Assembly (NCBI GenBank): GCA_002104905.1
Contig: MCFE01000066.1
Span: 62,001-126,000, forward strand
Length of the DNA stretch: 64,000 nucleotides
DNA from: Basidiobolus meristosporus CBS 931.73
Taxonomy: Eukaryota > Fungi > Basidiobolomycota
Direction: 5' to 3'
A program made the position numbers and the translations under genes. This document shows, piece by piece, positions 25,781 to 64,000 of the stretch (the stretch's first letter is position 1; the number at the start of each line of letters is the position of its first letter). A model generated the notes under the pieces. The model ran no database searches and was not told the DNA's origin. It was given only the letters and a program-made list of their open reading frames with translations.

Positions 25781-28700
25781 TGTTACAAGTCTTGGTATAA
25801 GAGTTGTAGAGGAATAGGGAGTTTAGCTAGTATTGTATTCACTAAAACTTGAACTGATTTTTATTGAGGTTCCAGCAGCTCCTTATATACATGTTGCCAG
25901 ATCAATTGTTGACTAATTGTATTTCCTAATGTAGGTTGTGGCTGATGACTCATTTGATTGCATCATCATCACCCAATAAGATCCTACTTAATATATCTAT
26001 TTCTGTCTGATAAGGATCTGCTGATTCATTTGCTGACTAATGCTACTGATTTCATAGATAATACTGATATACTGATAACCTAAACATATACTAATTGATT
26101 TGACTAAAAACTGATCTAACTTAACCACTCAAGCGGCAGATCATAACATTCTCCCCTACTAAAGTTGAGAGGGTTCTCCTGAATCTCTTTTCTTGTGATA
26201 CCAATATCTTGATGGTTCATTATTATCAGCAAGTCTTGCATGCTTGAGTCTGTCCCTATGCACTAAGTCTTCCCGGATATTGCCTTGTTTGTCCACCAGT
26301 TGGTAAGTTGCAAATGGACATTCTCTGATGATCTTGAATGGTCCTGTCCATTGTGGCTCAAATTTCTTCCGAGTGTTGTTTCTTAGCAATACAAAGTTCC
26401 CAACTGTCAATACTTCTGGTGCTATAGTCTTATCAAATCTCTGCTTCATCTTTTCTGCGCTTTGAGATACTTTGGTCTGTGCCTCTTGACGTCTTTGTTC
26501 CAGTTGCTGGTGTCTACTTGGCTGACTGAGTTCATCTTCTAAGGTGTCTGTAAGTTTTGGTTGTGTGAGATCTCCTGGAATCCTTGGTTCACATCCATAA
26601 ACTAAGTAAAATGGTGATTGCTGGGTGGTGTTGTGTACTCTGACTCTGCATGCAAAGAGTGCTTGGTCTATATACTCATCCCATCTACTGACAACTCCAT
26701 TTGCATACTTGGTCAGCATTTTCCCAAATAATCCATTGAACCGCTCAGTGACTCCATTAGTTCTGGGGTGATATGCTGAGGTTTTCAAGTGTCTGATCTA
26801 CTGCATTTCCAGGTAAGCCTCTAATGTCTTTGCCATAAAGTTTGCACCTCTATCAGATAAGATCTCCACAGGGCATCCAAACTTCATCAGGATCTCATGG
26901 TAAATGAAACTTGCAACTTCTTGTTCACTGGCTATTGGTACAGCTTTAGCAACTGGTCATTTAGTGGCATGGTCAATTGCTACTAGGATCCAACGGTTGC
27001 ATTTCCTGGTAGTTGGCAGACTTCCAATAAAGTCAATTCCCCATCTCTCAAATGGTCTTACAGGCTCCAAAGGGAAGAGTTTGGCAATTCTTTGTGGCTG
27101 GCCTTGATTGATTTGGCAGTTTGGGCATGTTTTCACTAGCTTCTCAATATCTTGTTTCATTCTGGGCCACCATGCTCTGGCTTTCACAAGGCTATAGGTT
27201 CCTTCAATCCCAAGATGTCCATATCCATTGTGTAGCTTATGTATTAAATCCAGGCGAGCAACATAAGGACAATAGGCAATAGGGCTTCCATCAACAATTC
27301 GGTAGAGTGTTTCATCCTGTACAACAAATTTGCTGGCTTCATCACGGATTATCTTCTTGATATCTTCATCCACCTCATTAGGAATGGCTTGGTCCTCCAA
27401 GTACTTTGGTAATAGGCTAGGCCAATCTGATTCATGTACCAAGTTGAGTTGTGCAACTTGATCTAATCTTGATAAGGCATCAGCAACCGTGTTGTTTTTT
27501 CCTTGGCAGTAGACAATCTCCAGGTCAAATTGCTGAATGTATTCACTCCATCTTGTCATTCTTCTAGAGAGTACCTTCTGAGTTAATATATACTTGAGGG
27601 AGGCATGATCAGTCTTCACAGTGCATTTGACTCCTTCAATATAGCATCTCCATGTCTTCAAACAGTGTATTATAGCAAGCATCTCCTTCTCATGGACTGG
27701 ATAGCTTTGTTCTGCTGAGTTCAGTTTCTTGGATTCAAAGGCAACAGGGTGGTCCTTTCCCTTGTGTTCTTGGCTCAGCACTCCACCAATTGCATAATCT
27801 GAAGCATCTGTGCACAGAGTGAACTCTTTTCTGAAGTCTGGTATTCTTAGGCTTGGCAGCTTAGCAAGTTCATTCTTGAGCGTCTGGAAGGCAGTCTCAC
27901 AAGCTATGTCCCACTTATAGGTATTGTCTTTCTTGAGGATATCAGTTAAAGGGGCTGCAATACTTGCAAAAGACTTGACAAATCTCTGATAATAGGAAAC
28001 CATTCCGAGGAATGATCTGAGTTCTGATATGCTATGGGGTTGCTTCAAATTCTTGATTACTTCCACCTTCTTTGGGTCTAAGGTTACTCCTGTGCTAGTC
28101 ACTATGTGTCCCAGGTATTCAACGTGCTCCTTGAAGAATTCACACTTGGCTAGCTTGCCATATGGCTTGTTCTCTCTTAGTTTCTTCAAGACCTTTTCAA
28201 TGTGCACTATGTGATCCTCTTCTGTCTTGCTGTATATCAATATGTCATCCAGGTAGATTATCACAAACTTGTCTAAGTACTCCTGAAAGACAGTCTGCAT
28301 CAGCGTCATGAATGTTGCAGGGGCATTAGTGAGGCCAAAACTCATGACTAAGTACTTGTAATGTCCATATCTGGTCCTGAATGCTGTCTTAGGGATATCT
28401 TCTGGTTTCACCCTAATCTGGTTGTATCCTGACATGAGGTCAATCTTGCTGAAAATAGTGGCTCCATTAAGTTGGTCCAAAAGCTCATCAATCCAAGGTA
28501 TGGGGTACTTATTCTTGACGGTAACTGAGTTCAGGGCTCTGTAGTCAATGCACATCCTAAGTGTTCCATCCTTCTTTTTCACAAAAAGCACTGGTGCTCC
28601 CCAGGGTGACTTGCTGGGCCTGATGTATCCTTGCTCCAATAGCTGATCAATTTGTCTCTTCATTTCCTCCAATTCCAATGGACTCATTCGGTAAGGTGTC

Positions 28701-30718
28701 TTGCTCACTGGAGGGCTATCTCCTCTGTCTATGGCATGATCCACGTCTCTGACTGGTGGTAGGCTTACAAGCTCATCTGGAAACACGTCTGAATATTTCT
28801 TCAAGAGAGTCTGGACCTGCTGGGGTGCTGGGGTAGAGGAATCCTCCTGTAATACCGCCATGAGGAACATCTGGGTACCTTTTCTAAGTGCTCTACAGAA
28901 CTGGGTCTTGCTAAGTTCACTTGTCTCACACACACTGGAATTGACCAAGTTGAAATCCAGCCTGGCAGGTAATAGCTCATAGGTCTTGTTGTCTTTTTGG
29001 ATCTGAATTGCATGGGTTCTCCAGTTGATTGATGGATTACAACAAAATAGCCAGGTTTTCCCAAGTACAAGGTCAAACTTGCAGTTCCCAAATATATAAG
29101 CCTGTAGGTCTTCTTCATAGTCATTGATCTTCATTCTTACTGGCTGGGTGATACGGTTGATTATGTGGGAGTTCCCATCAGCTGTGGAAACTGAAGTTGA
29201 TTTGGTAGGTTCCGAGTTGATTCCAGCTTTCAAAGCAAATTGCTCTGACATGTACTCATGCGATGCTCCTGAGTCAATCATGATCTTGGCAGGTACTCCA
29301 TTGATTACTGCATTCAAGTACAATAACTTCCCTGAGTTTGAAGTCATTTGGGACAAGTACTCTTCTGTCATATGGAAGGTGAGTTCCAAGTCTTCTTCAA
29401 GCTCATCTTCCACATTACTGTGCTCATGGGACTCAATAAGGTTGAAGGTTCTTGTTGGCTGGTGGCCATTTCTTCTCTGAGGGCAGTACTTTGCAATATG
29501 TCCCTGCTGGTGGCAATTGAAGCAAAGTCCTCTCTTCTTGCATTCTTCTGAGGAGGGATTCTTCTGCATAGCGTCTATTTCCATTGGTACTACTTCTGAT
29601 TGTCTTCTTTCATAATGATTATAGCCTTTCTGATTAGTCACTGTAGGCTTCCCAACTCCAAACATAGCTGAGTCATAGTCAATGGCAATCTTGATGGCTT
29701 CTTCAATAGTCTGAGGTCTTTGGTAATTGACTTCCTTGCGAGTTCTTTCTTTCAACCCATCAATAAAGTATTCAACTTGATCCAAGGGGTCCATTCTTTC
29801 AATTTGTCCAAGTAGACATCTGTACTCATAGATGTATTGTTGCACCATTCCTTTCTGTCTGAGTGTCTTTAACTTCCTTCTTAGTAGTGTCTGCTGGTGT
29901 GGAGGTTCAAAAGCATCCTGAATTTCCGACACAAACTCATCCCAGGTAGAGATTGTAGAGCATCCCATCATAGTGGCTGACCTGATCTTGTTGTGGTACC
30001 ACTGTAAAGCTGCATCTGCCAGGTAAGAAGCTGCATAATGCAACTTGCTTTCTGGAGCAATTCCTTTAGCTTTAAAAGCTTCTTCAATCTGAAAGAGCCA
30101 AGTTCCCAGGTTTTCATTGACTCTGCCATGGTACCGGTTGACCTTCACACTAAAGTTGCTCTTGACAGGGCTTTGCTGGCTCTGAGCCATGGTAGTCATT
30201 CCTTGTTGCTGTTGGCTGAGGATCTGGAGTAACTGTTGCTGTTGGGCCAGGATTTGCTGCATGGCATTCTTCCATTCTTGATTGTCCAACATCTTGAGGG
30301 TGGTTTCTTCTTTCTTCAGGAGGGAGGTTTCTGGTTATCGCTGCTACCAATGTTACAAGTCTTGGTATAAGAGTTGTAGAGGAATAGGGAGTTTATCTAG
30401 TATTGTATTCACTAAAACTTGAACTGATTTTTATTGAGGTTCCAGCAGCTCCTTATATACACGTTGCCAGATCAATTGCTGACTAATTGTATTTCCTAAT
30501 GTAGGTTGTGGCTGATGACTCATTTGATTGCATCATCATCACCCAATAAGATCCTACTTAATATATCTATTTCTGTCTGATAAGGATCTGCTGATTCATT
30601 TGCTGACTAATGCTACTGATTTCATAGATAATACTGATATACTGATAACCTAAACATATACTAATTGATTTGACTAAAAACTGATCTAACTTAACCATTC
30701 AAGCGGCAGATCATAACA
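25781..30718 (-). mobile_element. Near-intact Ty3/gypsy LTR retrotransposon (gypsy-A, 4938 bp)
   Basis: 368-bp LTRs 25781-26148 and 30351-30718 (4 mismatches), 4-bp TSD AATG, PBS TGGTAGCAGCG next to the 5' LTR, PPT AGTAGGGGAGAA. Confidence 0.98.
26159..30292 (-). pseudogene. gag-pol: Single-frame gypsy gag-pol (~1377 codons) with two nonsense changes in integrase
   Basis: gag with [14 protein letters not shown] knuckle, MIDSGAS protease, [13 protein letters not shown] RNase H, HNGYGH..CPNC and GIDFIG integrase, WTGPFKII GPY/F motif; stops at 26957-26959 (TGG->TGA) and ~26790 (CAG->TAG); no chromodomain seen. Confidence 0.95.
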
Positions 30719-31509: not shown

Positions 31510-32289
31510 GATTTTTAAAACAAGAAAAACCTATCATAGTAAGGGAAGGAGTGACTGTGCAGTTTATACCCAATCCCAAAAATCAACACAAATTGATGAT
31601 CCATGAAGCCATTGAGTGCAATGATGAAGTTGGGACTAATATTTATGTGGCTGTTGGAAGTCTAGCATGACATCACTTTAAGGCTGGCATGCCATGGGAC
31701 CATCAGGAGCTTAAGGCCAAGCAGAATGCACACAGCCTATTCCATGAGGATTGTCCTGTATTCAAGCATGCATACCCTATGAAATATAATTTGGTGCTGC
31801 GGGAGAATCCAATCCAGATCAGCCATCAGGATCCCATTTGGAGACCGTAAAAGCACTAACAGCTTGGAATTAGAGACTCTCTTAACAATCTTTTGGTTGG
31901 ATTATGACAGCATTTAGTTAATTTTACTTCCTAATATAGTTATAAAACCTGACAAGGCTTGATTGGTGCTGTAGCAATAATTGCATGACATTGTTGCGGA
32001 CTTAATGTGCTCTACAACTATTTTAAGCAGATTCAACAGGCTAGTGCATCCAATTGCCTTACATGGCAAAAACCTGACAATGTATTAACTGCCTCATTGT
32101 AAGTCTCTGATGGCATTATTGTCGCAGTATGGCAGCCTATAGTTAGTTCTGTAAAATGCAACTGTACCAATTTACCAAATGATATTTTGTTTTCATACCT
32201 CTCCTTATGCAGTTAATAAACCACTGTAGAATATCCCTCATTATTTGCTGACTCACTATTACCTTAGGTATTCCACATATAGTTCAAAT

Positions 32290-35200
32290 CAAGAAATACC
32301 ATGGCCTCCTCCTTACTAGCAACTACCAACACTCTCCCCACTGTAATTGACATGCTTCTATCATCTCAAGTTTATGGCTGTTTAATATGATACTTGCAAA
32401 GCTGACATATACCTTGTACTGCCGGTAACATAAACATCTTGCAAACATATGCCTGGTTGCCACCATTTGTGCCATGAATGCCTCCTTTATATCTGGAAAG
32501 AACTTTCTGATATTTAGCCAATATATTCCTTCTCCTTATTGGATTCTAGCTGCCTTACATATGTGCTCTTGCTCTTGTCTGAACAAGTTCTGTATGGAAT
32601 GGTGTCAAAGTTAGCTTGAGACCAACAGAAACCTGTTTACTATGGTAAAGTTTTCCTGATAAAGATTAGTTGCTTGTTGCACCTAACCCAACTTTGCATT
32701 ACTTTATGGATTACCCACACATTGGGGCTGCTTAGCTTCTTAATTCCATAGGCATAGATGTGTTACAAGTCTTGGTATAAGAGTTGTAGAGGAATAGGGA
32801 GTTTAGCTAGTATTGTATTCACTAAAACTTGAACTGATTTTTATTGAGGTTCCAGCAGCTCCTTATATACATTTTGCCAGATCAATTGCTGACTAATTAT
32901 ATTTCCTAATGTAGGTTGTGGCTGATGACTCATTTGATTGCATCATCAACACCCAATAAGATCCTACTTAATATATCTGTTTCTGTCTGATAAGGATCTG
33001 CTGATTCATTTGCTAACTGATGCTACTGATTTCATAGATAATACTGATATACTGATAACCTAAACATATACTATTTGATTTGACTAAAAACTGATCTAAC
33101 TTAAACATTCAAGCGGCAGATCATAACGATGTCTCTGTGTGAACATCTGTCTTCAGTACCCTTCAACTCTTCCTGGCAGTAACTCATGTGCCAACTCATT
33201 GCATTGGTCCCAGACTTGAAGGTAATATTCTGGATAAGATTAGGATATGGTAGTACCTGCAGCATGACTTGTCTTCCTATCTCCCCACACATCCACTCCA
33301 CAGGAAACTCCCTAAAGGTGAAGCAAGGCCCAATATTCTCCACACACCTAGCAAGATGGAGTAGAGAATGGATACAGTAGTGGCAGAGATCTACGCATGC
33401 AGCTTTGTGTTTGTAGTAGAGCAGCTTGAATACCATTATAAACTTGTTGCATAACAGTTGTAGATGTGTCAAGTTGTCATTGGTGATCCCCTTCTGGATA
33501 AATGTTCCTACAATGTCCACATATGACTCTCAAGGCTTTAATGTACTCTAGGTAGGAATGGCTTCAGAATGCTACTTGAATCAATATATATCCAGTTTAA
33601 CCAGTCTTGGCATTTGTATTGTGGCATATGCTTATGAATAGTGATTGGAGCCCATAAGAAGCACTTAAGATAGAGGCTGCATTGTAATATCTTGCCATCA
33701 CTTTCAAATTTCTTGGGTGTCTCAAAGGGCTTACTTATGTTGAAATGCTCCATGTACAACTTGGTCATTAGTATAGGATATTTGTTGAAAAGCAAATGCA
33801 ATGCTCTCAGTGGAAAGCTTTTGCTCTAACAAATACCCTTCATCTTCAGTATCTCCGGTTTCCAATTGATTCCATATTCTTGCTGATGGCTAATAGCTTG
33901 CCACCTTTGCTGCAATTGCAAGTTGACATCTGTAAGTTCTCTATATGGGGAGATGATTATCTCAGTGTTGGTGTTGAGGTAATAAAAATATTTGTGAGTT
34001 ATGGAGTAAATCCCTAGATCTCACACATTTAACAGCAATACCATCCATGGTGCTGAGAAAAGCTGGCTATCTTGCTGATGGCTGGGGTATCTCCAAAGCA
34101 GATAATAGTATGCATGTTGACATGATGGCCATTTACTGTTATCCTGCTGGAAAGCACACAACATTCATTCAGCAATGGATACAAGTAGCTATCCAGGTTG
34201 AACAGTGATTTAGGTCCAGATACCAGTGAGACTACCATCAGATAATTGCTCTGAAACCATAAGATGGGCAGCAGACTGGAAAGCATACAAAATTCATCCA
34301 GGTGGACACAGGTAGCTATCCAGTTTGGATGGTAATATAGGCCCAGATACCAGTGAGATTACCTTCAATCTTTACTCTGATACAGTATGATAGGCAACAG
34401 ATTCAGGTTGATGAAAATGAGTGGCCAGCATTAATTGCTGTTGGAGTACTTGTTTTATGAGAATCCATCAAGTGCTAGGGCAAATGTATGGTCTTAAATA
34501 CCTTTAAAGTAGCCCTTGCTTCAATGCTGTTTGCATTGTTTGCCATTAAATATATTGGATATGTTTGTACGTGATTGTTACTGAGTGTGGTATTTTATAG
34601 CTTTGCAATATTTGTTGGACTGTATGAGCTACCTTAGATGGGGTATTACCAGAATATATCTGAAGTGTGAACAATGTTTTCCCTTGTTAGTGTTGGATTC
34701 CTGACTGTTTGAACACATTGCAATGGTGGCCTTTTTGGATTTACATGCCATTCAACTGTCAACACATACTGGAATCAGGACAGTCTCTGGGTCATATGTT
34801 GCCAGTTGCATGATGGTTGTACACTTGTATTATGTATATGGTAAGTTGCATCCCAGAATGATTCTGGCAAGAAGTAGTTGTATATCATCAGAGCCCTCAT
34901 TACTGATATTGGTGGAAACATAGCACTTCTCTAGCCACAACATTATATCATTCACCAGTGGATGGATTACTGGACTCACTTGGCTCCACAAAGTATCCTT
35001 GGCATTTGTTTCAATGTGTGCTGTCTAAGAGCATACTGGGATTTGACCCTGCTCATACGTGGTACTGATGTTAGGGGAGATAGCCTCACAATCCATCAGT
35101 GAGCCTTCTTCATCAGAGATATCACTCTGAATGTTATATTCAAAAGGCTGGGGTGAGCCTAATGGTGCCAAAAACTCATCTGACTCAATTTGTGCAAGGT

Positions 35201-37382: not shown

Positions 37383-40300
37383 TGTTGAAATATTGGACTA
37401 TTTGGTATCATTCAGCAGCTAAAAATTTACTTAACAATTCTAGACTAGTCTTAGTCCCTGAAGGACGCATTTACTGCCTTAACTTTGCCACTTTCTCCAG
37501 ATATATGATCTTATGATTATTCCCCTATAGTCAGGATCAAATTAGCACTATTACCAAATATTATGTACTAACCCTGAAACTGTTGCAGAATGCTCTTGAA
37601 TATTGAGAAACCATCCCTACTTAGTGTTACAGCTGTATTACTTCTACAAAGGTATAAATACTGAGCTTCTTTATGAATAAACAACAGTTCAACTATTATG
37701 ACTATTTCTTGATAAGTTCCCTATAACCAAATCACTTCTTAAATTGCAACAGGTTATGAGCCCCAATTGCCTTAATCTATTCTAAAAATGACTTCTACCA
37801 GCAAACAAAGCAATACCAACATCTTTCCTGTAAAGGAGAGGTTTGATGGGAAGAACTAGAGACTTTGGAGAATCAAGATGCAGATCCACCTTGAGGAAAG
37901 AAAGCTTTGCAACATAGTAACAGGAAAGGAAGTTGAGCCCAAAGGAACAGCAGAAGATGTGGAGAAGTTTCAAGAGGAGAGAAAGGCCTGCAATGCCATA
38001 TGCATCAATGTGCAAGACTCCTCCATTGGACAAATCCATGCCGCAAATACTGCCAAAGCAGCATGGGAATCCTTAGAGAAGATCTTTAGAGCAAAGTCAG
38101 TATCAAGCAAGCTTTATTTAAAACTAAAGTTCTTCAACATGAGGAAGAAGCCAGATGATGACATGCTACAACTCATTACCAGAATGGGGACACTTGCAGA
38201 AGACCTTTACAGTATTAATGCTGGTGTAGATGATGAAGAAAAGATACTCTGTCTGCTTTGCAGCCTACTAGATGAGTATGAACCACTCATACTTTCTTTT
38301 GAAAGCAGAGAAGACAACTTCACTTTAGACTATGTCAAAGGAAGACCTCTCCATGAAGTACTCAGATGTAATGATCAAGCAGAGAAAATTGAAGATAATG
38401 CTTTATTCAGTTCAGAAAGGCACACAGAAAAGAAGGGAAAGCAACAAAACCAAAGAAAACCTGGCTGCTGTAACTACTGTAAAAAGCCAGGACACTGGGC
38501 AAGAGAATGCAAGAAGAAACAAGCAGACAAAAAACAGAAACTAGAGCAGGCAAACCATATAACTACTGATGAACATTTATTTGTAACTGTACAAGAGAGT
38601 GCAAGTAACCAAAGTAATGAATGGTATATTGACTCTGGAGCATCACAGCATATTTGTCATATAAAGGATTGGTTCAGCAACTTAAAGACTATTCCCATAA
38701 GAAAGGTTTATCTGGGAGATTACTCTGCATTGGAAGCTACCGCCAGTGGGTCTGTACAACTAAATATGAGTGATAACTCAGGGGCAACAACAGCAAAACT
38801 GACTGACGTACTCTATGCACCTGGAATAGCTAAGAACCTACTCTCAGTCAGTAAAGCAACTACTCAGGGACTGAAATTTGTTTTTACTAAGCTGAGCTAC
38901 TCAATATTGAGTGAAAATGGACAAAAATTAGCTTTGGCAATCAGAGATCACAACATATACAAGTTACAATGCAAGATCATTGTACCTGAGTATGTAAACA
39001 TTGCTGAAACCGATGAAACCAACTGGGAAACGTAGCATAGGAGGCTAGGACACATTGGGGAACAGAAAATGAGCCAGTTGGTGAAAAATCAGCTTGTTTT
39101 GGGCCTAAAATATTCAATTCCAATCAAATTGAATGTTTGTAAGGGATGTTCATATGGCAAACAAGCTAGGCAACGTTTCAAGAGCTCAGAAGGCATCAAT
39201 ACCACCAAAATATTGGCTATTGTACACTCAGACATATGTGCCCCATGAGAACACTGTCCTTTGGAGCCAAGAGATACTTTATGACGTTTATTGATGACAA
39301 GACAAGATATACATGGGTGTATTTCCTCAAAACAAAGGATGAAGCTTTAGAGACGTTTAAGCACTTCAAGAACATGGCAGAAACTCAAACTGGGTGTAAG
39401 TTGAAGGTACTACAAAGTGACCATGGAGGAGAATACTGCTCAAAGGAGTTTGCAAAATACCGCTTGTCTACTGGTATACTTCAGCAGACCACAGTTCCTC
39501 ATACTCCACAGCAAAATGGAGTAGCAGAACGTCAAATAGAACAATGGTAGAGATGGGAAGATCTATGCTACATGATAATGGAATGGACTACAGGTTTTGG
39601 GCTGAATCTGTTGCTACCACTGTATACATCAAGAACAGATGCCCAACAACAGCACTACGTGATTCTACACCCTTTGAAGCTTATACAGGCAATAAACCAG
39701 ACCTCCAGCACCCCAAGATGTTTGGCAGTGATGTTTTTTATCACATCCCTGACAAAAAACGCTCAAAGTTGGAACCAAAGAGTAGGAAAGGGACCTTTCT
39801 TGGGTATTGTGAAGATACTAAAGGGTATAGAGTGTATGATGGCAAAATTCAGAAGCTGATCAGGAGCAGGGACGTTGTATTTGAGGAGAATTCAGATCAG
39901 AAAGCCACAGAAATCATTGGCCAGCTGCCTGATGATGCAATCAACACTAATAAAGAAGATACGTACCAAATCCAGCCAGATATGGAAGATACTTCTACCA
40001 GCTCTAGATCAGAACAGATTATCCCGGTTAGGTGATCTACTAGAATAAGAAATGCCCCTGGATCCTGGTGGCAGACATCCAATGATCATGAAGAAGCTTA
40101 TCTTGCCTTATGTGCCAAACCTCAGAATTAGGAACAGGCAATGCAAAGTCCAGATGCTACTAAGTGGCAACAAGCCATGCAGAAGGAGTACCAATCACTG
40201 ATCAAGGCAAAAACATGGGAACTGGTAGACTTACCAAATGGGAGAAAGCCAATAGGATGTAGATGGATCTACAAGATCAAGATAACCTCAAATGGTGCCG

Positions 40301-42798
40301 TTGATAAGTACAAGGCTAGATTGGTAGCTAAAGGCTATTCCCAGATCCAGGGACTAGACTTTAAGGAAAAATTTGCTCCGGTTGCCAAGTTTAACTCTAT
40401 TAGGACAGTTATAGCCCTGGCAGCTGTACACAGTCTGGATCTACACCAAATGGATGTCAAAAGAGCCTTTCAAAATGGGGATTTGCAAGAAACTATATAT
40501 ATGGAGCAACCAGAAGGTTTTACCAATCCAAAAGGCCCCCATAAGGTGTGCAAACTTAGAAAATTGTTGTATGGGCTTAAGCAGGCACCTAGAGCATGGT
40601 ATAACAAGATTAACACATATCTAGAGGAAATTGGGTTCTCTTGTAGCACTGCAGATCACGGTATATATGTGAAACAGCTCAAAAAAGGTGTGATCATCCT
40701 AGTTCTTTATGTGGACAACCTAATTATAGCTACAAGTGATCAAGAGGCACTTAATCAGACAAAATCAGATCTCTTCAGCAAGTTTGAGATGAAAGATCTT
40801 GAAAATAGAGCTAATTTCTTGGAATTGAGGTCAAATTTGACATACCTACGCAGAAAATTGGGCTGAATCAGTCTAAGTACATCAGGGACATTTGTAGTTG
40901 CTTCAAAATGGAAAATGCAAGCCTGCAGCAACCCCTATGGACAATAACCTGAAATTAAGCAAATCTTAGCCAGTTATAGATGAAAACGGCTCAAATATGG
41001 ACCAAAACTTTCCCTATCAATCAATGGTTGGTAGCCTAATGTACTTGATAGTGTCTACATGTCCAGATATTGCAGTAGCAGTTGGAATAGTCGGTCAATT
41101 CATGCAGAATTATGGATCAGATCAAATTGCAGCAGTTAAGCGGATTTTCAGATATCTACAAGATACCATAAATAAGGTACTGGAATACTCTGGAGCAGCT
41201 AATAGGCAAAAATTTGATGGTTATAGTGATTCAGATTGGGGTAGGGATCTGATTGACAGATGCTCTACCACAGGCTATGTATTTCTTTATGCTGGTGCAG
41301 CTATTACTTGGGATTGCAAGAAACAACCAACTGTGGCACTATCTACAACTGAAGCCAACTATATGGCTGCATGTCAAGCAACTAAGGAGGCTATATGGCT
41401 ACAAAAACTATTCATAGACTTAGGTTTCAATTCAGGTGAACAAACATGTATTTACAAGGGTAATCAAAGTTGTATTTCATTAGCTAGAAATCCTACTAAT
41501 CATGCCAGAACTAAGCACATTGATATACAGCATCACTTTGTGAGGGAAGCAGTAGAAAATAACTTAGTGGAGTTAGTTTACTGCCCAACTGACAAAATGG
41601 TGGCAGACATATTGACAAAACCATTAGCTAGGCCACAGTATGAGATCCTTAGAGAGAAATTGGGATTAAGAAATTATTAGACTTGTTCCGTTGGATAGTG
41701 CCACATTGAGCCATGAGTGCCAAATGATGCCATAGTGTGCCAGAGAGGTAAAGTGAGCCTCTACCTGGCCACAGAGTGTGAAACATAGCTCCGCATCTTC
41801 ATGCAAAGCAGCCCCTGTGTTTCACCCGTTGCGCAGGAGAAAATCCATTTTTTGACCTTTTTTTGTGGATCAATGTAGCTCAGGATGTGTAAGAGCACAG
41901 GAGAACTGAAGATATGCATCTGGTACTCAATGCCCATGGCACTCTGAATCTAGCTCCTGTAGCTTGTATCATGTCACAAAAATGAATGGCACTATCTTGG
42001 TCCACTGGTACTATCTGGCACTATATTTAAATATTAGCCCTAAAGTAAGATCTATACAAAGCACTTTTAGTGCCAGATAGTACCAGTGGACCAAGATAGT
42101 GCCATTCATTTTTGTGACATGATGCAAGCTACAGGAGCTAGATTCAGAGTGTCATGGGTATTGAGTACCAGATGCATATCTTCAATCTGCTTGTGCTCTA
42201 ACACATCCTGCACAAAATTGATCCAAAAAAAAAGGTCAAAAAATGGATTTTCTCCAGCACAATGGGTGAAACACAGGGGCTGCTTTGCATGAAGATGCAG
42301 AGCTATGTTTCACACTCTGTGGCCAGGTAGAGGCTCACATGGCCTCTCTGGCACACTATGGCATCATTTGGCACTCATGGCTCAATGTGGCACTATCCAA
42401 CGGAACAAGTCTATTTAGTTGAGGGGCAGTGTTGAAATATTGAACTATTTGGTATCATTCAGCAGCTAAAAATTTACTTAACAATTCTAGACTAGTCTTG
42501 GTCACTGAAGGACGCATTTACTGCCTTAACTTTGCCACTTTCTCCAGATATATGATCTTATGATTATTCCCCTATAGTCAGGATCAAATTAGCACTATTA
42601 CCAAATATTATGTACTAACCCTGAAACTGTTACAGAATGCTCTTGAATATTGAGAAACCGTCCCTATTTAGTGTTACAGCTGTATTACTTCTACAAAGGT
42701 ATAAATACTGAGCTTCTTTATGAATAAACAACAGTTCAACTATTATCACTATTTCTTGATAAGTTCCCTATAACCAAATCACTTCTTAAATTGCAACA
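37383..42798 (+). mobile_element. gag-pol: Full-length Ty1/copia (copia-2) carrying a MITE
   Basis: 369-bp LTRs 37383-37751 and 42430-42798 (~7 mismatches), perfect 5-bp TSD GGAAA, PBS at 37752, broken gag-pol ~37788-41680. Confidence 0.97.
41679..42412. mobile_element. 734-bp foldback MITE (345-bp inverted arms, 44-bp spacer)
   Basis: AGACTTGTTCCGTTGGATAGTGCCACA...TGTGGCACTATCCAACGGAACAAGTCT with 3-bp TSD ATT; the empty site is seen in copia-1 at ~6960. Confidence 0.95.
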
Positions 42799-46253: not shown

Positions 46254-47606
46254 CTTGCGGTGTTAATGGGCAAGAACTGCAGTTTTTTTTGCATGCCTCC
46301 CTGTCTCAGGCTTGGGTAGACATTATTCCCTTTACCTTTTCCTTTATCACTACCAGGTCTTCACTGCTACTCTGTCTGAGTGCCTCTTTTAATGGGTTAC
46401 ATTTTCTCCTTGATATATTCTGCTCTGACATATCTGTTTTGGCCTGCTTGTCCCTTGCTGACACCTTTCTGGCAACCTGATGTTTCTTTTCTGCTTGTTT
46501 AAGCTCTCAACCACAGTTGTGACATGCTCCTGTAAAAGCTACAGGCTTTTGTCACTGACAGGTCTTTCACTGATACTTTGACTGAGTGCTTCTTGAATGG
46601 TTCTGAGCATTTCCCTTGATATGTGCTGTGCTGGTGCATCAGCATCTACCTGCTTATTGCTTATAGGCACACTTCTGGGTATTTGGCATCTCTTTATGCT
46701 TATTAAGAGCTTCTGGCTATGCTTGTAATGTGCTCTTGAAGAAGCTGCTGGTAATTAGCCATTGCACCCTTGTTCTTCTGCCTTTGATAGTTGTGGCTAT
46801 CCTTAAGATACTTTCTTAGCATACCAATGCTGGCCCAAAATCTGTTTGCCTGCTTGAATCCAGAATAATGCTCATGGAACTTGAGGAGTCTGCATTATTA
46901 CTTTAGTGGGCACACTGTCAACATGGCCTTTTTTGGATGCAGCCCTGCTTGTTGCACTGAATGTTATAGCAAGCTGTTGTCCAACTGTGCTTCTGCTGCC
47001 CTCAGCAGTGGGGCTTGGTTGAGAACCAGACAACTTTGTGTTATTTTTTCATGGCACACAAATGGTAATGAGTCAAACCAAGGGGGAAATGGTGTTACAT
47101 ATACATATGTATATGGTTCCACAATTTTGTTTATAATGCTTATTATGGCAGATTATCATTGAATCTTACATTCATATAGGTAAAATGTCTCAAATACAAG
47201 GCTGTCTTAAATTCACATGAGTATTGACCAAAAAGTAATATAATAGCACTATGTTGTTCAGTGTCAAACTCTTTGCCCCATAGACAAGACTACTTTGTTT
47301 CAACACCATAAGAGAAGAGAAAAAAGGCCAAGTGGCTATTGTATCAAGCCTTTCAGCCATGAAGCATACGGACAGTGTAGGAAGTATTACTAGGATCATG
47401 GCAAGTGTTCTCCCGCACAAGTAATGTTTGACCATTCATCAGTCACTATAGTACCAACAATATCTTGCTGCCAATTGAAACTTCTATATTGTCACTTTGC
47501 CATCTTTGTAACCTTGCTCAAACTGAGTCAGATTAGATTGTAACACCTTTAGGCTCACCTCAGCCCTCTGAATATGACATGCAGAGTGATATCTCTGATG
47601 AAGAAG

Positions 47607-51235: not shown

Positions 51236-51865
51236 CTAATGCATATGTTTTGACCTGCTTGTCCCTTGCCGGCACTCTTCTGGCAACCACATGTTTCTTT
51301 CCTGCTTGTTTTGAGCTCTCAACTGCAGTTGCAATGGTCTCCTGTAAAGCTGCTTGTTTTTATCACTGCCAGATCCTTCACTGCTACTGTTACTGAGTAC
51401 TGCTTGAGTGGTACTAAACTTGTTCCTTAACAAAGGTTGGGCTGGTGCATTTGTGTCTGCCTGCTTGTCCCTAATTGGCACTCTTCCAGCAACCTGACGT
51501 CTCTTTGATGCTTGTCTGGAGCTTTTGGCCCTGCTTGTAAAAGGCACTAGAGGAAGCTGCTGGTTCTTACTCATGGCACCCTTTTTCTTCTGCCTTTGAT
51601 TGTTTCTGCTATTCTTAAGATGCTTTCTGTGCGTACCAATGCTGGCCCAAAATCTGTTTGCCTGTTTGAATCCAGGATAATGATCATGGAACAAGTCAAG
51701 TGCATTCTGCTTGGCCTTGAGTTCCTGATGATCCCATGGTATGCCAGCCTTAAGGTGAAGGCATGCTTGACTTCTGGTGGTCTCTTGAATATTAGCCCAC
51801 TCTTCATTATTGCACTCAACAGCTTCAGGGATCTTCAATGTCTTTTGACATTTAGGCTTTGGCAT
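51236..51865 (-). pseudogene. Best-preserved piece of the CACTA accessory ORF (unknown function)
   Basis: EEWANIQE..LKAGIPWDHQELKAKQNALDLFHDHYPGFKQANRFWAS, with homologous pieces at 31580-31774, 36702-36962, 43701-44100 and 46260-46900. Confidence 0.7.
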
Positions 51866-53894
51866 AAACGCTATATTGTCTCCCTCCTATGCTGTGGTAG
51901 GTTTTTCTATGGGCTTTTAAGATGTAAAAAATTTGTTATTCCACCTAAATATTCACCAAATATAGTCACTTAGATCTTTACCTTCAAATCCTAGAGAATA
52001 CTGACCAAATTCCTTGTTGGGATTTACTTAGAATATTTTCACCAAAATACCAGGTACCCAAAACATGATAATTCTCAAAGTTGTCCAAGCAGCCCCAAAC
52101 TTTGCACACATGCTCTTGGGACCTTCCTTAACCTATTCTACATGTTTGTAATGCCAAGACCATGTAAAAGTATAAATACTACTTTTACATTCAATAGATC
52201 ATTAAGTGAAAACCACATAATCTACTGGTTCTCCCAATCACTTCCAATATCTCAAAGACTCTTACAACAACCTTATCCCACTCTCATCAAGAATTTTACC
52301 TTCAAGTCCCTCATGGATGTGATGAGTTGGCATATGGAGGACAGCCTGGAAGTGTTGGAAAATGCTGAGGGCAGATGTGCATATGGAGACACCTATGCCT
52401 ATGGCATTAAGAAGCTAATCAGCTACAATGCATGGGTAACAAGTTAAGTATTGCAAAATAGGATTGGGTGCAACAAGAAACTAATTTTTATTAGGAGAAC
52501 TCTACCAAGGTATGCCAGATTTCTCTTGGTCACAAGCCAACTTCTACACCACTCAATATGGAATTCACACAAATAAGAGCCAGAGCAAACCTATAAGGGG
52601 GACTAGAATCCAGCAGGGAGATGGAATATATTGGCTAAATACCAAAAGGTTCTTTGCAAATATTCAGGAGGTATTGATGGTAGAAGTGGCAACAACCAAG
52701 TATATGTTTGCACAATGTATATGTTACCAGCAGTACAAGGTATATGGCAACTTTGCAAGTATCACACTAAAAAGCCATAAAGTTGAAGTGATAGAAGTAT
52801 GTCAATTGCGGCAGGTGTGTGTGTTTGTAGAGGTTAGTAAGCAGGAGGCCATAGTTTTTTTTGATTCAAACCATATGTGGAATAATACCCAAGGTAGTAG
52901 TGGGTAAGCAAATAAAGAAGGGTGATTCTACAGTGGAATGTATGAGTTGCACAAGGGGAGGAAGAAAAAGGAAATACCGTTTGGTAAATTGGTAAAGTTG
53001 CATTATACAGAGCTAGCTGTAGGCCACCATACTGCCATAATAATGCCAATAGAGACTTGTAATGAGGCCATTGAAATACTGTCGTGTTTTTTGCCATATA
53101 AGGCAATTGAATGTACTGGCTGGTTAGATCTATTCAAAATATTTGTATAGTAGACTTGTTCCATCGTACCGTGCCAGGGCGCGCGGCGCAATCCGCGGTT
53201 GCAAAGAACGATCGGGCGCGATATTATGGCTACCAGAAGACAGGATTGTTCTTGGACAATTTTGCACTATGCGGGACGATCTTGCACACTATGGCACAAT
53301 CTGACACGATGAGGTTGGCACGGATGATTGCGCCAACTTGTAATGTTTGCATCATGTGCGCAATTGGATACCACTATAATGGCAGGTAAAATCCGGTATT
53401 TGGATATGTTTCTTTAATGTAAATGGAAATAAATGTGTATCACACTATAAACTATACTGATACTTACCATTTTGGTTACCCTCACTCCAATTGGACGGTA
53501 TCTCAGTGGTTAATTGGTCCAAAAGTATCCTGAAGCTGGCATCCCCCAATTGGCTCATTGACTACTAAAAAAGCTACCTGATTCGCCAACAAATATCCCA
53601 TTTTGCCCATTGAGCAAGTAAATCCCTGATCCTAGTGATTGGGCTAGGTGTCATAGCTAGCACGCAAGCGATCATGTAGGTGCGGAACAGATCCAATTGC
53701 TGCACTGGTATTACAGATGATGTATATATATGCAGGGTGTTTATTTATTGGGGTTCTGTCTCAAATGTGAGACGACCTTGATATTACTTATATCAAAAAT
53801 TTGATGATCACTGATTTGCAATGGCTCGATTTGGATTGCAAAAAAAAAGGGTTGTTGGGATCATTACAAATGTGAGCAATTCAAAGTGATCGCA

Positions 53895-55049
53895 TCATCT
53901 TCTCCTGGGTTTTTTTCTCACAGGGATTACTACTGAAGCATTTGGTAGTGACTCACTTTGCACACCTATACTACTTCCAGGCTGACTATCATCTTGGCTA
54001 CTTGTGTATTCGTAGTCAGTATTTTGCCTCCTAGTTGATGACTGCGATGCTGCAGCTTGGCCGTGCTGAATCGCTCCGACTGAACCAACTGAACCGGCCT
54101 GTAGTGCCACGCGCTGGCGCGTTCTTTTGCTTGCCAAGGGCTCTGGTGGTTGAGGCACTTCATGTTGGTCATCATCAGTCAGTTCACCAGAAGTAACTTG
54201 CTGATGGTCGGGCAAAACAGCACGCACAGGCGCGCCTTGACGCGTTGAGATGGCCCTTGGCTGAGTTTGATGGGATGCCGCATGTTGACGCGACTCGGTC
54301 CGCTCCAATGGACTCGTGTCTAAATGAGCAGTTTGGCGAGTTCTTGTGGTTTTGCTCTGAAGCGCGCGCGTTGACCCGACGCGCGTTGACTCGACGCGGG
54401 GCGTTCTGGTAAAGGTTGTTGGCGTGGTCTGGACTGACGTGCGCCGGCGTGCTGTGGTTGCAAGAGATGGTAGGGAATCCAGCAAGGCGTGCTGGCGCGA
54501 TCTGGACGATGTTGCCCGCGGTCTGTATTCTTCCTCCTGAAGCTCACCATCTGATTCCTCAAGGTATTCACTTACCCTCTGTCTGATACTTTGGAGCTGT
54601 TGCCTGGATGAGTCCTGTGTATATTGCTCTCGGAAGCCACTTAGCTCTACTAATATATCACGTAGTACATTAGTCATTTGAGGCAAAAAGTCATTCAAAA
54701 TCTCCTTGGTTCCCAAAGTTGAGGCACAAACGGACGCGTCCGGCCCGTACTGTGCAAATTGCGCGCAAAATTGTTCCCGCGCGGCTTCTTTGTCAAATCC
54801 CCTCACTCTCAGCTCATTCTTGATTTCAATACTTGTCTTGTTATATATCTTTTTACATACATTGGCTGGCATCTTGATGTAGAACTCATGCCACAGCTTT
54901 CTACTCAAATTCTTCCATCTTTGTTGACTCTCTGAGGTATCTAGTTCTGCTAGATTAATCAGTAGTGCTCAAATATCTGTATGAAGGCTCATCATAGACA
55001 CTTGGGCCATACTAAAATCATTTGGCAAGAACTCAAACGGATCCGACAT
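53895..55049 (-). CDS. Accessory protein of the PHIS element (~384 codons) with one in-frame TGA at 54969-54971; helical N-terminus, R/S/T/Q-rich tail, C-terminal RKKPRRR
   Basis: ATG 55049 (MSDPFEFLPNDF..) is in frame with the 337-aa track ORF 53895-54908; the next in-frame ATG after the stop is 54872. Confidence 0.7.
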
Positions 55050-55501
55050 TGACTTTTCCGGTCCGGACCGCGCTTGTGAGCTGGGGGATGGGTTTTGTCT
55101 GGGTTGTACTAAAGATGAGTTGAGGCTTGGTATGGGGACCATAGCAACGGATTTGGATACTTATACAGCAGTATATTGGCATCAACCTGGTCTTATATGA
55201 AATATATATGAAAACTAATGTGATTGTTGAATTTTCCATATATTATGCATGATGCATCTTGGATTGCGTTGACACGGATCAGATCACATCAATCGCAGAT
55301 TTCCTATTTGATTATAGACCTATGATTAAAGCATCAATAAAAGTACCAAGGCATTGTTTGCGGATGATTTTTGCGACATAATGATGGTATACATGGCAAT
55401 TGATGGAGATTTAACCATAATGTGTTAAAAATCAGATAAATAACGTGGATCGCGCCAAATCAATTCAAACCGCCTTTATACAATCATCCATCAATTTTAA
55501 T
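55050..55501. promoter_or_regulatory. Putative bidirectional promoter between the two PHIS genes
   Basis: ~450-bp non-coding gap between head-to-head ATGs, with AT-rich TATA-like runs and retained CpGs. Confidence 0.5.
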
Positions 55502-56386
55502 ATGACTTACTCATCTGAATGGTCTTTTCTCATCAATCCCATCACTACCACTGGATTTCCTTTTGACACACTGGAGGAGATCTATACCAAGTACTGTGGA
55601 CCATCAACCCTAATCTACTCAAGGAGATCCCTTGTTAAGCTTCTCTGCTATTACAAGAACTATTGCCCTACAAGGTTTCATCCCACCATCCATGGCAACA
55701 AAAGTCCTAGAAGCTTTCATTCCCAGCTGACAGCAATGGAGAACCACCTTGCAGAGGGTATGAATGACTTAGAGCAAGCTTGGAATACTAGGTTCAGAAG
55801 CTCCAATAGATTTCCATATCCCAGAGTGTTCAGCAACAGGTTCCATATCAGGAGTATTTTGGATACCTTCCCAGTGAGGATTAACAGACCTTCTAGAGGG
55901 CAGAGGCACTTTTATTCTGGCAAGTACAAGGCACACTGTGTGAAGTTTCAAGCACTGTCTGACATTGAGGGCAACATCATCTGGTTTAGTGGGCCATTTG
56001 CTGGAAGTAGGCATGACAAAGCACTCTGGGTAGAGAATCATCCTGAATTCAGTAGAGGGGAGAAATGTATGGCAGACTTAGCCTATATAGGAGAGGATTG
56101 TCAGAGATTAGGATGTATTACAGCTTATAGGAAGCCAAGGAATGGTGTGCTTAGCAGGAAGCAGAAGCTCTACAATGAGATATTTAATCATTTCAGAGTG
56201 AGGGTAGAGGACACATTTGGATATCTGAAGAGATTCAGCATATTGGCAGGTAAATACAGAGGAAAGTCATATATAGGTGAAAACAGCAGGATAGGTAAAA
56301 TAGTTAAGATACTTATTAATGCACAGTATGTTCATACAAGAAGACATCCACTGAGAGAAATGTGTCTGGAGCATTATGAAGAGTAA
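55502..56386 (+). CDS. DDE transposase, PIF/Harbinger/IS5-like (DDE_Tnp_4 type), 294 aa, open frame
   Basis: SILDTFPVRINRP, YSGKYKAHCVKFQ, GPFAGSRHD, MADLAYIG and RVRVEDTFGYLKRFSIL motifs. Confidence 0.93.
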   Translation: MTYSSEWSFLINPITTTGFPFDTLEEIYTKYCGPSTLIYSRRSLVKLLCYYKNYCPTRFHPTIHGNKSPRSFHSQLTAMENHLAEGMNDLEQAWNTRFRSSNRFPYPRVFSNRFHIRSILDTFPVRINRPSRGQRHFYSGKYKAHCVKFQALSDIEGNIIWFSGPFAGSRHDKALWVENHPEFSRGEKCMADLAYIGEDCQRLGCITAYRKPRNGVLSRKQKLYNEIFNHFRVRVEDTFGYLKRFSILAGKYRGKSYIGENSRIGKIVKILINAQYVHTRRHPLREMCLEHYEE

Positions 56387-57647
56387 ATAAAGCAAGGAAA
56401 GCACTATTCTGAGCAACATAAGTAAGATTGAGTAAAATTACCAGTAACTGTATCATACCACTGGCATCATGGTAGAAATTATAGTGCCGGATAGTGCCGT
56501 AGAGTGCCAGATCAATCCGGCACTATAAACAGGCTGGCACTATGTGGCACTATCCAACGGAACAAGTCTAGTGCATTAAGTCCACATCAATGTCAAGCAA
56601 TTATTGTTATAGCACCATTCCAACCCTGTCAAGTTTTATCGCTTTATTTGGCAGTAAAATTAGCAAATGCTATTGTGATCCCACCATAAAATTGTCAAGA
56701 GGGTCAATAGTTCCAAGCTACTGGTATTATGACAGTATCCAAACAGGATCCTCATGGCTGATCTGCATTAGATCCACCTGCAGGACTAAATTATTTTTCA
56801 TAGGGGTAGTATTTGTACTTTTACATGGTCTTGGCAAAACAGATATATAGGATATATTCAGGAAGGTCCCAAGAGCATCTGACAAAGGTTTGGTGCTGTT
56901 TTGGCAACTTACAAATTGTTAAGAATTTTGACCAAGTTCTTTGTTGGGATTTACTTGCAGTATTCTCACCAAAACATCAGGTGTCTACAACACAAAATTT
57001 TGTGAAGTGATGTTCCAAGTGACCAGTCAGGTGAACCTTTAAGTGCAATTACAAACTTTTACATGCCTTGCCAAGGCCATGTAAAATCACCCTATGAAGA
57101 ATAATTTGGTCCTGCAGGTGGATCCAATCCAGATCATCTGTCAAGATCCTGTTTAGAGACCATCATAACAGCAGCAGCTTAGAATTAGTGACACTCCTGA
57201 CAATCTTATAACAAGATCATGACAGTGTTTTGCAAATTTTACAGCCAAATAAAGGGATAAAACTTGACAATTTTTATTTGATGCTGTGACAATATTGCAT
57301 GGCATTGTTGCAGACTTTCAGCGCTCTATTACTATTTTAAGTGGATCCAGTTGGCCAGGACTTCCAATTGCCTTATATGGCAAGAAACCTGTTGGTATTT
57401 TGATGGCCTCACCGCAAGACTGATGACATTTTCTTGGCAGTATGATGGCCAACCACTGGTTCTATATAATGCTACCAAACCAATTTAACAAATGGTATTT
57501 CCTTTTTCTACCTCCCCTTGTGCAATTCATATATTCCACTGTAGAAGCACCTTTCTTTATTTGCTTGCCTACTACTACCCTGGGTATTCCACATATAGTT
57601 TGAATCAAAAAAACTATGGCCTCCTGCTTACTAACCTCTACAAACGC

Positions 57648-58912: not shown

Positions 58913-59646
58913 AGACTTGTTCTGTTGGATAGTGCCACATTGAGCCATGAGTGCCAAATGATGCCATAGTGTGCCAGGGAGGCCAAGTGAGCCTACACTT
59001 GGCCAAAGAGTGTGCAGCACAGCTCTGCATCTTTGTGCAAAGTAGCCCCTGTGTTTCACTCATTGTGATGGAGAAAATCCATTTTTTGACCTTTTTTTTT
59101 AGGTAAATGGTGTACAGGATGTGCAAGTGCACAAAAGGATTGAAGATATGCATCTGGTGGTCAATACCCATGACACTCTGAATCTAGCTCCTGTGGCTTG
59201 TAACATGTCACAAAAATGGATGGCACTATCTTGGTCCACTGGTACTATCTGGCACTATAAGTGCTTTGTATTGATCTTACTTTAGGGCTAATATTTAAAT
59301 ATAGTGCCGGATAGTACCAGTGGACCAAGATAGTGCCATCCATTTTTGTGACATGTTACAAGCCACAGGAGCTAGATTCAGAGTGCCATGGGTATTGAGT
59401 ACCAGATTTATATCTTCAATCCTTTAGTGCTCTTACACATCCTGCACAATATTGATCCACAAAAAAACGTCAAAAAATGGATTTTCTCCTGCATCATAAG
59501 TGAAACATAGGGGCTGCTTTGCATGAAGATGCATATCTATGTTTCACATTCTGTGGCCAAGTATAGGCTCACTTGGCCTCTCTGGCACACTATGGCATCA
59601 TTTGGCACTCATGGCTCAATGTGGCACTATCCAATGGAACAAGTCT
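58913..59646. mobile_element. 734-bp foldback MITE, spacer inverted relative to 41679-42412
   Basis: Same termini, 345-bp arms, 44-bp spacer, 3-bp TSD AAT. Confidence 0.95.
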
Positions 59647-62478
59647 AATATATTCCTTCTCCCTGCTGGATTCTAGTCCCCCTTATAGGTGTGCTCTGGC
59701 TTTTGTTTGTGTGAATTCTGTATTAAATGGTGTAGAAGTTGGCTTGTGTCCATAAGAAATCCAGCATATCTTAGTGGAGCTTTCCTGATATAAATTAGTT
59801 GCATGTTGCACCCAATCCAACTTTGCATTACTTAACTGATTACCCACGCAATGGGGCTGCTTAGCTTCTTAATGTTATAGGTGTAGGTGTCTCCATGTGC
59901 ACATTTGTCATCAGTATTTTCCAACTCTTTCTGGCTGTCCTTGAGGTGCCAACTCATCACATCCATCACAGACTTGAAGGTAATATTCTTGATGAAACTT
60001 GGATACAGTAGTACCTGCAGCCTGACTTGTCTTCCTATCTCCCCACACATCCACTCCATAGGAGACTCCCAGAAGGTGAAGCAAAGGCCAATATTCTCCA
60101 CACACCATGCAAGATGGAGTAGAGAATGGATACAGTAGTGGCAAAGATCTACACATTCAGTTTTATGTTTGTAGTATAGCCACTCAAATCCCATCACAAA
60201 CTCCTCACACAATAGCTGCAGATGCGTCAAGTTGGCATTGGTGATCTGCTTCTGGATAAATTTTCCTACAATGTCCACATATGACTCCCAATGCTTCAAA
60301 TGTACTCTTGGTAGGAATGGGCTCAGAATACCACTTGAATCAATACATATCCAGTTCATCCAGTCTTTGCATTTGTGTTATTGCATATGCGTATGAATAT
60401 TAATTGGAGCCTATGAAAAGTACTTAGGGTAGCGGATACTCTGTAATATCTTGCCAATTTTTTAAATTTCTCCGGTATCTCAAAGTGCTTATTTAGCTTG
60501 AAATGCCCCATGTACAACTTGGTCATCAGTACAGGGATATTGTTGAAAAGCAACTGCCTTGCTCCCAGTGGAAAGCTTTTGCTCCAACAAATACACTCTA
60601 TCTTAAGTTTTCTGGTGTCCAATTGATTCCATATTGCAGGCAATGGCTTATAGCCTGCCAACTTTGCTGTAATTGCATGCTTACTTCTGTACGTTCTCTC
60701 TGTGGAAAGATGATGTTCTTAGTGCTGGTGTTTGGATAATAAAAATGTGTGTGAGTTATGAAGTAAATCCCCTAGATCTCACACATTCAACAGCAATACC
60801 ATTGATTTTGCCCAGAAAAACCTGCTATCTTGCTAATGGCTGGGTATCTCCAATGCAGATAATAATATGCACTTTTACATGATGGCCATTTACTGTTATC
60901 CTGCTGGAAAGCATACAAAATTCATCCAGGAATGGATACAGGTAGCTATCCAGGTTGGACAGTGCTTTAGGCCCAGATACCAGTGAGACTACCATCAGAT
61001 TATTGCTCTGAAACCATAAGATGGGCAGCAGATTCAGATTGATGAGAATCAGTGGCCAGCAGGATATGCTGGTAGAGTACTTGTTTAATGAGAATCCATC
61101 AAGTGCTAAAGCAAAGGCGTGGTCATACATACCTTCAAGGTAGCCCTTGCTTCTTAGATGTTTGTAATGTTTGCCATCAAATATATCAGATATGTTTGCA
61201 CTTGATTGATACTGAGTGTGGTACTGTATAGCTTTGCAATATTTGTTGGACTGCATCAGCTTCCTCAAATGGGGTATGACTGGTATACATCCAAAGTGTG
61301 AACAATGTTTTCCCTCAATGGTGGTGGATTGCTGACAATTTGGACACGTTGCAATGGTAGCATTTTTGGATGTGAATGCCATGCAACTGTTAAAACATGC
61401 TGGAATCAGGACAGTCTCTGGGTCATATGTTGCCAGCCCCATTACAGTTGTCCACTTGTACCAGGTACATGGTAAGTTTCATCCCGGTATGATTTTGGCA
61501 AGAAGTAGTAATAAATCCTCAAAGCCCCCATTACTCATTTTAGTGGAAATGCACCACTTCTCTAGCAAAAACATTACATCATTCACCAGTAGATGGATTA
61601 CTGGGCTCACTTGGCTCCATAAAGTATCCTTGGCATTTGTTTCAATGGGTGTTGTCTCATTGCATATAGGGATTTGACTAGGCTTATATGTGGTACTGTT
61701 GTTAGGGGAGATAGGCTCAAAATCCATCAGTGAGCCTTCTTTGCCAGAGCTATCACTCTGCGTGCCATATTCAGAAGGCTGAGGTGAGCCTAAGGGTGTC
61801 ACAAACTCACCTGACTCAGTTTGCACAAGGTGACAAAGACGGCCAGGTGCCAATATAGAAGTATCAACTGGCTGGCAAGATAATGTTGGTACAGTAGGGA
61901 CCAATAAATGGTCCAATATGACTTGGGTGGCAAAACACTGGCCGTGATCCTTGTAATACATCCTTTGCTGCCTGCATGCTTCATGGCTGAGAGGCTTGCC
62001 ACAATAGCCACATGGTCTTTTTTCTCTTCTCTTACAGCATTAAGTCAAAGTAGTCTTGTCCATGGGGCAAACAGTTTGACCTTTAACAACGTAAAGCTAC
62101 TATATCACTTATTAGTCAATACTCATGTGAACTTAACACAGTCTTGTATTTGAGACATCACACCTACATGAATGTAAGATTCAATGATGACCCGCCATAG
62201 TAGGCATTATAAATAAAGTTGTGGCACCACATACACATGTATCTGTAACACTACTTCCCCTATGGTTTGACTCACTTCCATATATATGCCGCCAAAAATA
62301 AAGCAAAGTCAACTGGTTCTCAACCAGATGCCACCACTGACAGCAATAGAACAGCAGATGGACAACAGCTTGCTTTGACATTCAGTGCAACAAGCAGTGC
62401 TATATCTAAAAAAGGCCATGTTAACAGTGTCCCCACTGAATGGAATAATACAGACTCCTCAAGCTCTCAGTCAAGTAG

Positions 62479-63321: not shown

Positions 63322-64000
63322 GCACAATCTGCAGTCATTAAGAACAATTAGGTGCCATATTGTAGCTACCAGTAGGCAGGATTGCTCTTGGACAATTTTG
63401 CACCATGTGGGACAATCTTTCACACTATGGCACAATCTAACACAATGAGGTTGGCACAAATGATTGGGCCCACTTGTAATGTTTGCATCACGTGCACAAT
63501 TGGATACCGCTATTATGGTAGGTAAAATCTGGTATTTGGATATGTTTTGTTAATGTAAATGGAAATACATGCATATCACACTAAAAACTACACTGATACT
63601 TACCATTTTGCTTACCATCACTCCAATTGGATGGTATCTCAGTGGTTAATTGGTCCAAAAGTATCCTGAAGCTGTCAGCCCCCAGTTAGCTCTTTGACCA
63701 ATAGACAAGCTACCTGATTTGCCATCAAATATCCCATTTTGCCCATTAAGCAAGTAAATCCCTGATCCTAGTGATTGGATAAGGTGTTATAGCTAGCACG
63801 CAATCAATTGTATGGGTGCAAATCAGATCAAATGGCTGCACTGGTGCCACAGATGATGTATACATATGCAGGGTGTTTATCTTTAGGGATCCTGTCACAA
63901 ATGTGAGACAACCTTAATATTGCTTATACCAAAAATTTAGTGATCACTGATTTGCAATGGTTTGATGCAGATTGCAAAAAAAAATGTGTTGTTTAGATCA
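63322..64000. mobile_element. Old, CpG-decayed copy of the PHIS element's left subterminal region (runs off window end)
   Basis: Colinear with ~53186-53860, with most CG changed to TG/CA/TA. Confidence 0.88.

Follow-up and report, generated by a model that had tools for sequence, protein, structure and literature searches.

A probable Pangu (Harbinger2) transposon and companion fold-back miniature elements in the genome of Basidiobolus meristosporus

The DNA analysed here, a stretch of 64,000 nucleotides from contig MCFE01000066.1 of the fungus Basidiobolus meristosporus CBS 931.73 (assembly GCA_002104905.1, positions 62,001 to 126,000 of the forward strand; hereafter the window), carries at 53152-56569 a DNA transposon of 3418 bp with 11-bp exact inverted ends (AGACTTGTTCC) and two head-to-head open reading frames (ORFs), one for a transposase and one for a second protein, referred to below as the partner. 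The element is very probably a young, nearly intact autonomous member of the Pangu group (Harbinger2 in Repbase) of the PHIS superfamily, accompanied by nearby fold-back miniature inverted-repeat transposable elements (MITEs). Its parts, including the target-site duplications (TSDs) and terminal inverted repeats (TIRs), are arranged as follows.

53149..53151, no strand: TSD AGT, left copy; paralogous empty site at 32009-32011(-)
53152..53162, plus strand: left TIR AGACTTGTTCC, exact match; the inverted repeat prolongs to 26 nt at 81% identity
53163..53897, no strand: left subterminal and 3'-untranslated region, 86% conserved in the second copy at 63322-64000
53898..54968, minus strand: partner gene after the TGA, 357 codons
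54969..54971, minus strand: in-frame TGA interrupting the partner frame
54972..55142, minus strand: N-terminal piece of the partner gene, 57 codons beginning at ATG 55142
55143..55501, no strand: AT-rich spacer (34% GC) separating the divergent start codons; presumed bidirectional promoter
55502..56386, plus strand: transposase gene, 294 aa plus stop; its RNase H-like DDE core is preceded by a helix-turn-helix-like domain at the N terminus
56475..56558, no strand: array of ATAGTGCC/GGCACTAT motifs just inside the right end, occurring in both orientations and in 10-bp steps
56559..56569, minus strand: right TIR, exact reverse complement of AGACTTGTTCC
56570..56572, no strand: TSD AGT, right copy

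The 11-bp TIR reported in the initial annotation of this DNA could be located exactly at both termini, 53152-53162 (+) and 56559-56569 (-), and with up to one mismatch AGACTTGTTCC matches 10 times in the window, where 1.25 matches would be expected. The two ends are asymmetric, as that annotation had also described, with a motif array that is dense at the right and sparse at the left. Read inward from the right terminus, ATAGTGCC lies at +17, +27 and +44 and its complement GGCAC at +62, +72 and +82, the last two positions having the GGCACTAT form, so that six ATAGTGCC/GGCACTAT copies, one of them imperfect, are packed inside 90 bp, against a single GTGCCA at +20 near the left TIR, with looser GGCAC motifs at +142 and +166. 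Where 2.2 occurrences of GGCACTAT would be expected in the window, there are 20, and the element and its two MITEs account for 17 of them. These MITEs, together with an older copy of the family, make up the remaining family members in the window:

41679..42412, no strand: fold-back MITE, 734 bp, TSD ATT; empty sites at 6964-6966 and 19556-19558(-)
58913..59646, no strand: fold-back MITE, 734 bp, TSD AAT, in orientation opposite to the first; empty sites at 52630-52632(-) and 32520-32522
63322..64000, plus strand: older family member represented by its left part, 86% identical to 53186-53863, running past the window end

The flanking triplets claimed at the outset, AGT for the autonomous copy and ATT and AAT for the MITEs, were all seen. 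Because the window holds paralogues of the repeats into which the elements inserted, their empty sites could be read directly, and the paralogues of both MITE insertions carry a single ATT or a single AAT at the four sites listed above. The empty site of the autonomous copy, in a paralogue that is 78% identical, holds a single 3-bp AGC; two of the three duplications are fixed exactly by empty sites. The single-triplet empty sites confirm that the 3-bp ANT duplication, seen at three insertions, is real. The repeat that received the autonomous element has its paralogues at 32010-32299 and 57333-57613, and the MITE at 41679-42412 is inserted inside a copia copy.

The MITE family that had been proposed consists of two 734-bp fold-backs, 90.7% identical to each other, which share the terminus of the autonomous right end. 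Both termini of both MITEs have the same first 28 nt as that end, followed by TGCCA-type motifs at +21, +31, +40, +50 and +60, and past about 35 bp the MITE sequence is unrelated to the autonomous element. Their fold-back arms measure 345-347 nt, with a complementarity of 94% in the copy at 41679-42412 and 89% in that at 58913-59646, and folding of the MITE DNA gave -402.6 kcal/mol with a z score of -63.5. A further pair of inverted TIR-like 11-mers at 51416 and 51698 (one mismatch each, 283 bp apart) was rejected as a MITE, because paralogues at 37311-36650 and 46408-46880 continue through both apparent ends. In the older copy at 63322-64000 approximately the first 34 bp of the element, including the TIR, are missing, and what looked like similarity to the left TIR near 63300 is host repeat sequence.

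The transposase frame is open, in agreement with the initial annotation, and its product matches DDE_Tnp_4 in Pfam (3.9e-23, aligned over positions 1-153 of the 158-position profile), with DDE_Tnp_1 at 4e-9 and the IS5-family model NF033581 of NCBIfam at 4.8e-13. Since its relatives begin at the equivalent methionine, the start was set at ATG 55502, which corrects the GTG start of the mechanically called ORF. Word searches returned as relatives only metagenome and Logan proteins of about 280-300 aa, the closest of them 62% identical, while plasmid-borne bacterial genes of the IS5 family share 28-34% identity across the catalytic half. Residues D121, D192 and E236 are invariant among 24 relatives. 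An AlphaFold2 model built from 24 sequences reached a predicted local distance difference test score (pLDDT) of 90.2 and a predicted template modelling score of 0.90; its core aligns with piggyBac (Z 10.4), Tn5 (Z 10.0) and ISCth4 (Z 8.1), and residues ~20-87 align with the helix-turn-helix domains of sigma-factor region 4 (Z 4.4-4.8). Foldseek matches were weak, and every one of them was a transposase or integrase. A profile search of PDB sequences recovered no solved relative.

The second gene does run head-to-head with the transposase gene as had been claimed, and it has no Pfam match, with the correction that its frame is interrupted by the in-frame TGA at 54969-54971. Downstream of this codon, the deduced protein consists of a mildly acidic N-terminal part of about 140 aa that is predicted to be helical, an acidic linker, and a tail of 190 aa rich in Ser, Thr, Arg, Gln and Pro (isoelectric point 11.4) that ends in KKPRRR. 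Two readings of the TGA are possible: it may have arisen by nonsense mutation, or it may lie within a short intron. TGA is a stop codon that arises by CpG decay of an arginine codon, and the partner gene is CpG-rich within a CpG-eroding genome, which is relevant to the nonsense reading. The best intron candidate over the TGA covers 63 nt of the minus strand (55012-54950), with GTATGG followed by CTGAT and then TAG. There are 19 frame-keeping GT..AG pairs across the TGA, and the choice between intron and nonsense mutation is therefore undecidable from sequence alone.

The partner has been searched for relatives and domains at several levels. Pfam gave no match at E<=10 on four pieces of the protein, NCBIfam gave none, and a word search returned no relatives. 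Queried with the first 165 residues beyond the stop, a complete HMMER scan over 1.84 billion representatives yielded 0 matches at E<=0.001, searches of the ESM Atlas and of PDB sequences were blank, and 19 related metagenome loci gave nothing with either tblastn or phmmer. For the Myb families, none appeared at E<=10 in the pieces on each side of the TGA, which were searched apart; such a domain, if present, would be split by the TGA. The SAP profile likewise gave no Pfam match at E<=10 on a 33-aa or an 80-aa piece. The QQRWKNL and IKNELRVRGF stretches pointed out in the initial annotation are present in the protein, and they gain no profile or structure support as Myb/SANT or SAP domains. A single-sequence AlphaFold2 model of the partner is all-helical over about 140 residues, with a pLDDT of 42.5 that is too poor for a fold search, and at the SAP-like stretch this model shows two helices with pLDDT below 50.

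These features are best compared with the published description of Pangu, a group that is defined by TSD composition and duplicates ANT (PMC4482050; Han et al. 2015, Mob DNA 6:12) and that corresponds to Harbinger2 of Repbase (Kojima 2025, PMC12730594). Pangu TIRs are 11-40 bp long and usually begin with AG or GG, the mean length of the elements is 3487 bp, and they contain two ORFs, the second with "no known motifs" (PMC4482050). The present element agrees in its 3-bp ANT duplication, its 11-bp TIR starting with AG, its length of 3418 bp, its two ORFs, its transposase with only a DDE_Tnp_4/IS5-like domain, and its second ORF of about 400 aa without a known motif, and the original suggestion of a Pangu-like PHIS transposon is supported by the DDE domain and by the TSD, TIR, length and two-ORF features. 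Among 26 of the families in Table S3 of the 2015 study, a domain-less second ORF of 170-592 aa is given for 20, Myb_DNA-bind_4 for one, and no second ORF is listed for the other five (PMC4482050). Fungal hosts named there include Melampsora, Puccinia, Tremella, Tuber and Talaromyces (PMC4482050). The element differs from these precedents in that nothing found exceeds 62% identity to its transposase, its host Basidiobolus falls outside the ascomycete and basidiomycete hosts of the 2015 list, its MITEs are fold-backs composed of two right-type ends, and its transposase gene is CpG-free and its partner gene CpG-rich. Accordingly, the element is very probably a new family of an already described kind. 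The phrases "undescribed system" and "divergent novel accessory gene", under which the locus had been introduced, are not supported, given a literature in which Pangu elements are already known as two-ORF elements of about 3.5 kb with a motif-less second ORF (PMC4482050).

In common with canonical PIF/Harbinger elements (PIF, Pong/mPing, Harbinger3_DR), the element has two genes, DDE_Tnp_4, subterminal arrays, MITEs and, presumably, a division of labour between transposase and accessory protein, but it duplicates ANT instead of TWA (CWG in Harbinger3_DR and NuwaI), its transposase is shorter (294 aa), and its partner shows no detectable Myb/SANT domain in the separately searched pieces. ISL2EU elements have a 2-bp AT duplication, against 3 bp here, and no match to their YqaJ exonuclease was found in Pfam; Spy elements have no TSD and a single ORF, in contrast to a 3-bp TSD and two ORFs; and NuwaI and NuwaII duplicate CWG and TNA (the latter within C|TNA|G), in contrast to AGT, ATT and AAT. 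On the basis of these three TSDs, canonical PIF/Harbinger, ISL2EU, Spy and Nuwa are therefore excluded. Bacterial IS5 shares the ANT target preference with Pangu, which was placed next to it (PMC4482050), and the catalytic domain encoded here matches NF033581 and is 28-34% identical to plasmid genes; unlike IS5, the present element is eukaryotic, has two genes and measures 3.4 kb, and the three bacterial IS5-type proteins stand on a long separate branch in a tree of 24 transposase relatives that contains no labelled references.

Two other explanations deserve to be weighed against the Pangu assignment. The element could be a canonical PIF/Harbinger transposon whose partner is a degenerate Myb/SANT protein, the ANT duplications being an accident of sampling. 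DDE_Tnp_4 is the Harbinger-type Pfam family, and QQRWKNLSRKLW, read by eye, resembles a Myb/SANT-like third helix; yet all three TSDs begin with A and end with T, none is TWA and two are fixed by empty sites, the TIR begins with AG in line with the published Pangu description, Pfam detected no Myb family in the partner pieces, and the IS5 model match of 4.8e-13 accords with the published position of Pangu beside IS5. Taken together, this explanation appears extremely improbable. It is also very unlikely, in our judgement, that the locus represents an undescribed two-component system, apart from all PHIS groups, in which the partner is a new non-Myb adaptor, for example a SAP-like one, that reads the ATAGTGCC arrays. 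Such a system would fit the lack of partner relatives in the word, HMMER, ESM Atlas, Pfam, PDB and related-locus searches, and the hydrophobic spacing of IKNELRVRGF...EQFCAQF in the partner looks SAP-like to the eye. Nevertheless, the Pfam SAP and Myb models were blank even on short partner pieces, the single-sequence model is unusable at its pLDDT, and missing relatives are weak evidence because protein databases cover transposon ORFs poorly. Since a domain-less second ORF is the norm for Pangu in the families tabulated in 2015, an orphan partner is no mark of an undescribed system and sets nothing apart.

Several points weigh against placing the element in Pangu. Clade membership is judged from TSD, architecture and the match to the IS5 model, the TSDs are known from three insertions only, and in the tree the transposase groups with good support only with its 61%-identical relatives. 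Furthermore, the role of the partner rests wholly on analogy, no DNA-binding domain having been detected in it.

Two loci from JGI metagenomes show that the same layout of about 3.4 kb with head-to-head genes occurs in distant relatives, whose transposases are 27-29% identical to that of the present element. The first (L003, 174-3607) is an element of about 3.4 kb with a 16-bp TIR, ATT on both flanks and ATCGAT subterminal arrays, and its second ORF is head-to-head and domain-less; this ORF and the partner gave no BLASTP match, and their local alignment score of 25 equals the shuffle mean. The second (L004, 73-3712) has a TIR that starts with AGACTTG like that of 53152-56569 and bears ATTCGCAT arrays, and its flanks, ATT and AAT, leave the TSD ambiguous.

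Harbinger3_DR and PIF/Pong are the model systems on which a transposition mechanism for the Pangu-type element can be patterned. By this analogy, the transposase, with help from the product of the divergent gene, would recognize the TIRs and the subterminal motif arrays, excise the element and reinsert it with 3-bp staggered cuts. The helical N-terminal part of the partner may bind DNA, the transposase or both, and in the former case the subterminal arrays would be its likely target, whereas its long basic tail and KKPRRR end could serve nuclear import of the complex. The 734-bp MITEs, having two right-type termini and the same motif phasing, may have been moved in trans by the same proteins. 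The TGA-bearing copy would rely on partner protein supplied by other copies, unless the TGA is intronic.

The composition of the element bears on its age. The window as a whole has a CpG observed/expected ratio of 0.13, with an excess of TpG and CpA, and 105 of its 330 CpGs are concentrated inside the 3.4-kb element. They are distributed unevenly: the ratio is 1.25 at the left end (53152-53420) and 0.89 in the partner ORF, where 18 of 37 arginine codons are CGN, and the 885-bp transposase ORF is devoid of CpG and encodes all of its 28 arginines by AGR. Since 19 of 22 CpGs have decayed to TG or CA in the older copy at 63322-64000, and the CpGs of 53152-56569 have been kept, the latter is a young copy. 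One might go further and read the CpG-free transposase gene, set against the CpG-rich partner gene and left end, as an adaptation to a CpG-methylating and CpG-eroding host, jointly with the partner as a new non-Myb/SANT class of PHIS accessory proteins that reads 10-bp-phased ATAGTGCC arrays. We regard this combined proposal as very doubtful; if it were true, CpG decay could not damage such a transposase gene.

Although the locus at 53152-56569 reveals no new kind of mobile element, it provides a clean and almost undamaged example of Pangu/Harbinger2, a group that has received little study, with an autonomous copy, MITEs and empty sites in one window. The function of the second gene is a question common to the whole Pangu group, and this element could be the starting material for a first biochemical test of the role of the domain-less second ORF.

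The whole window (1-64000) is made up of nested transposable elements. Apart from the family described above, Ty3/gypsy is represented by a polyprotein at 26957-30292(-), copia by pieces at 4413-6986, 20279-21124 and 37878-41680, and Transposase_21 (CACTA-type) by a fragment at 60825-61442(-).

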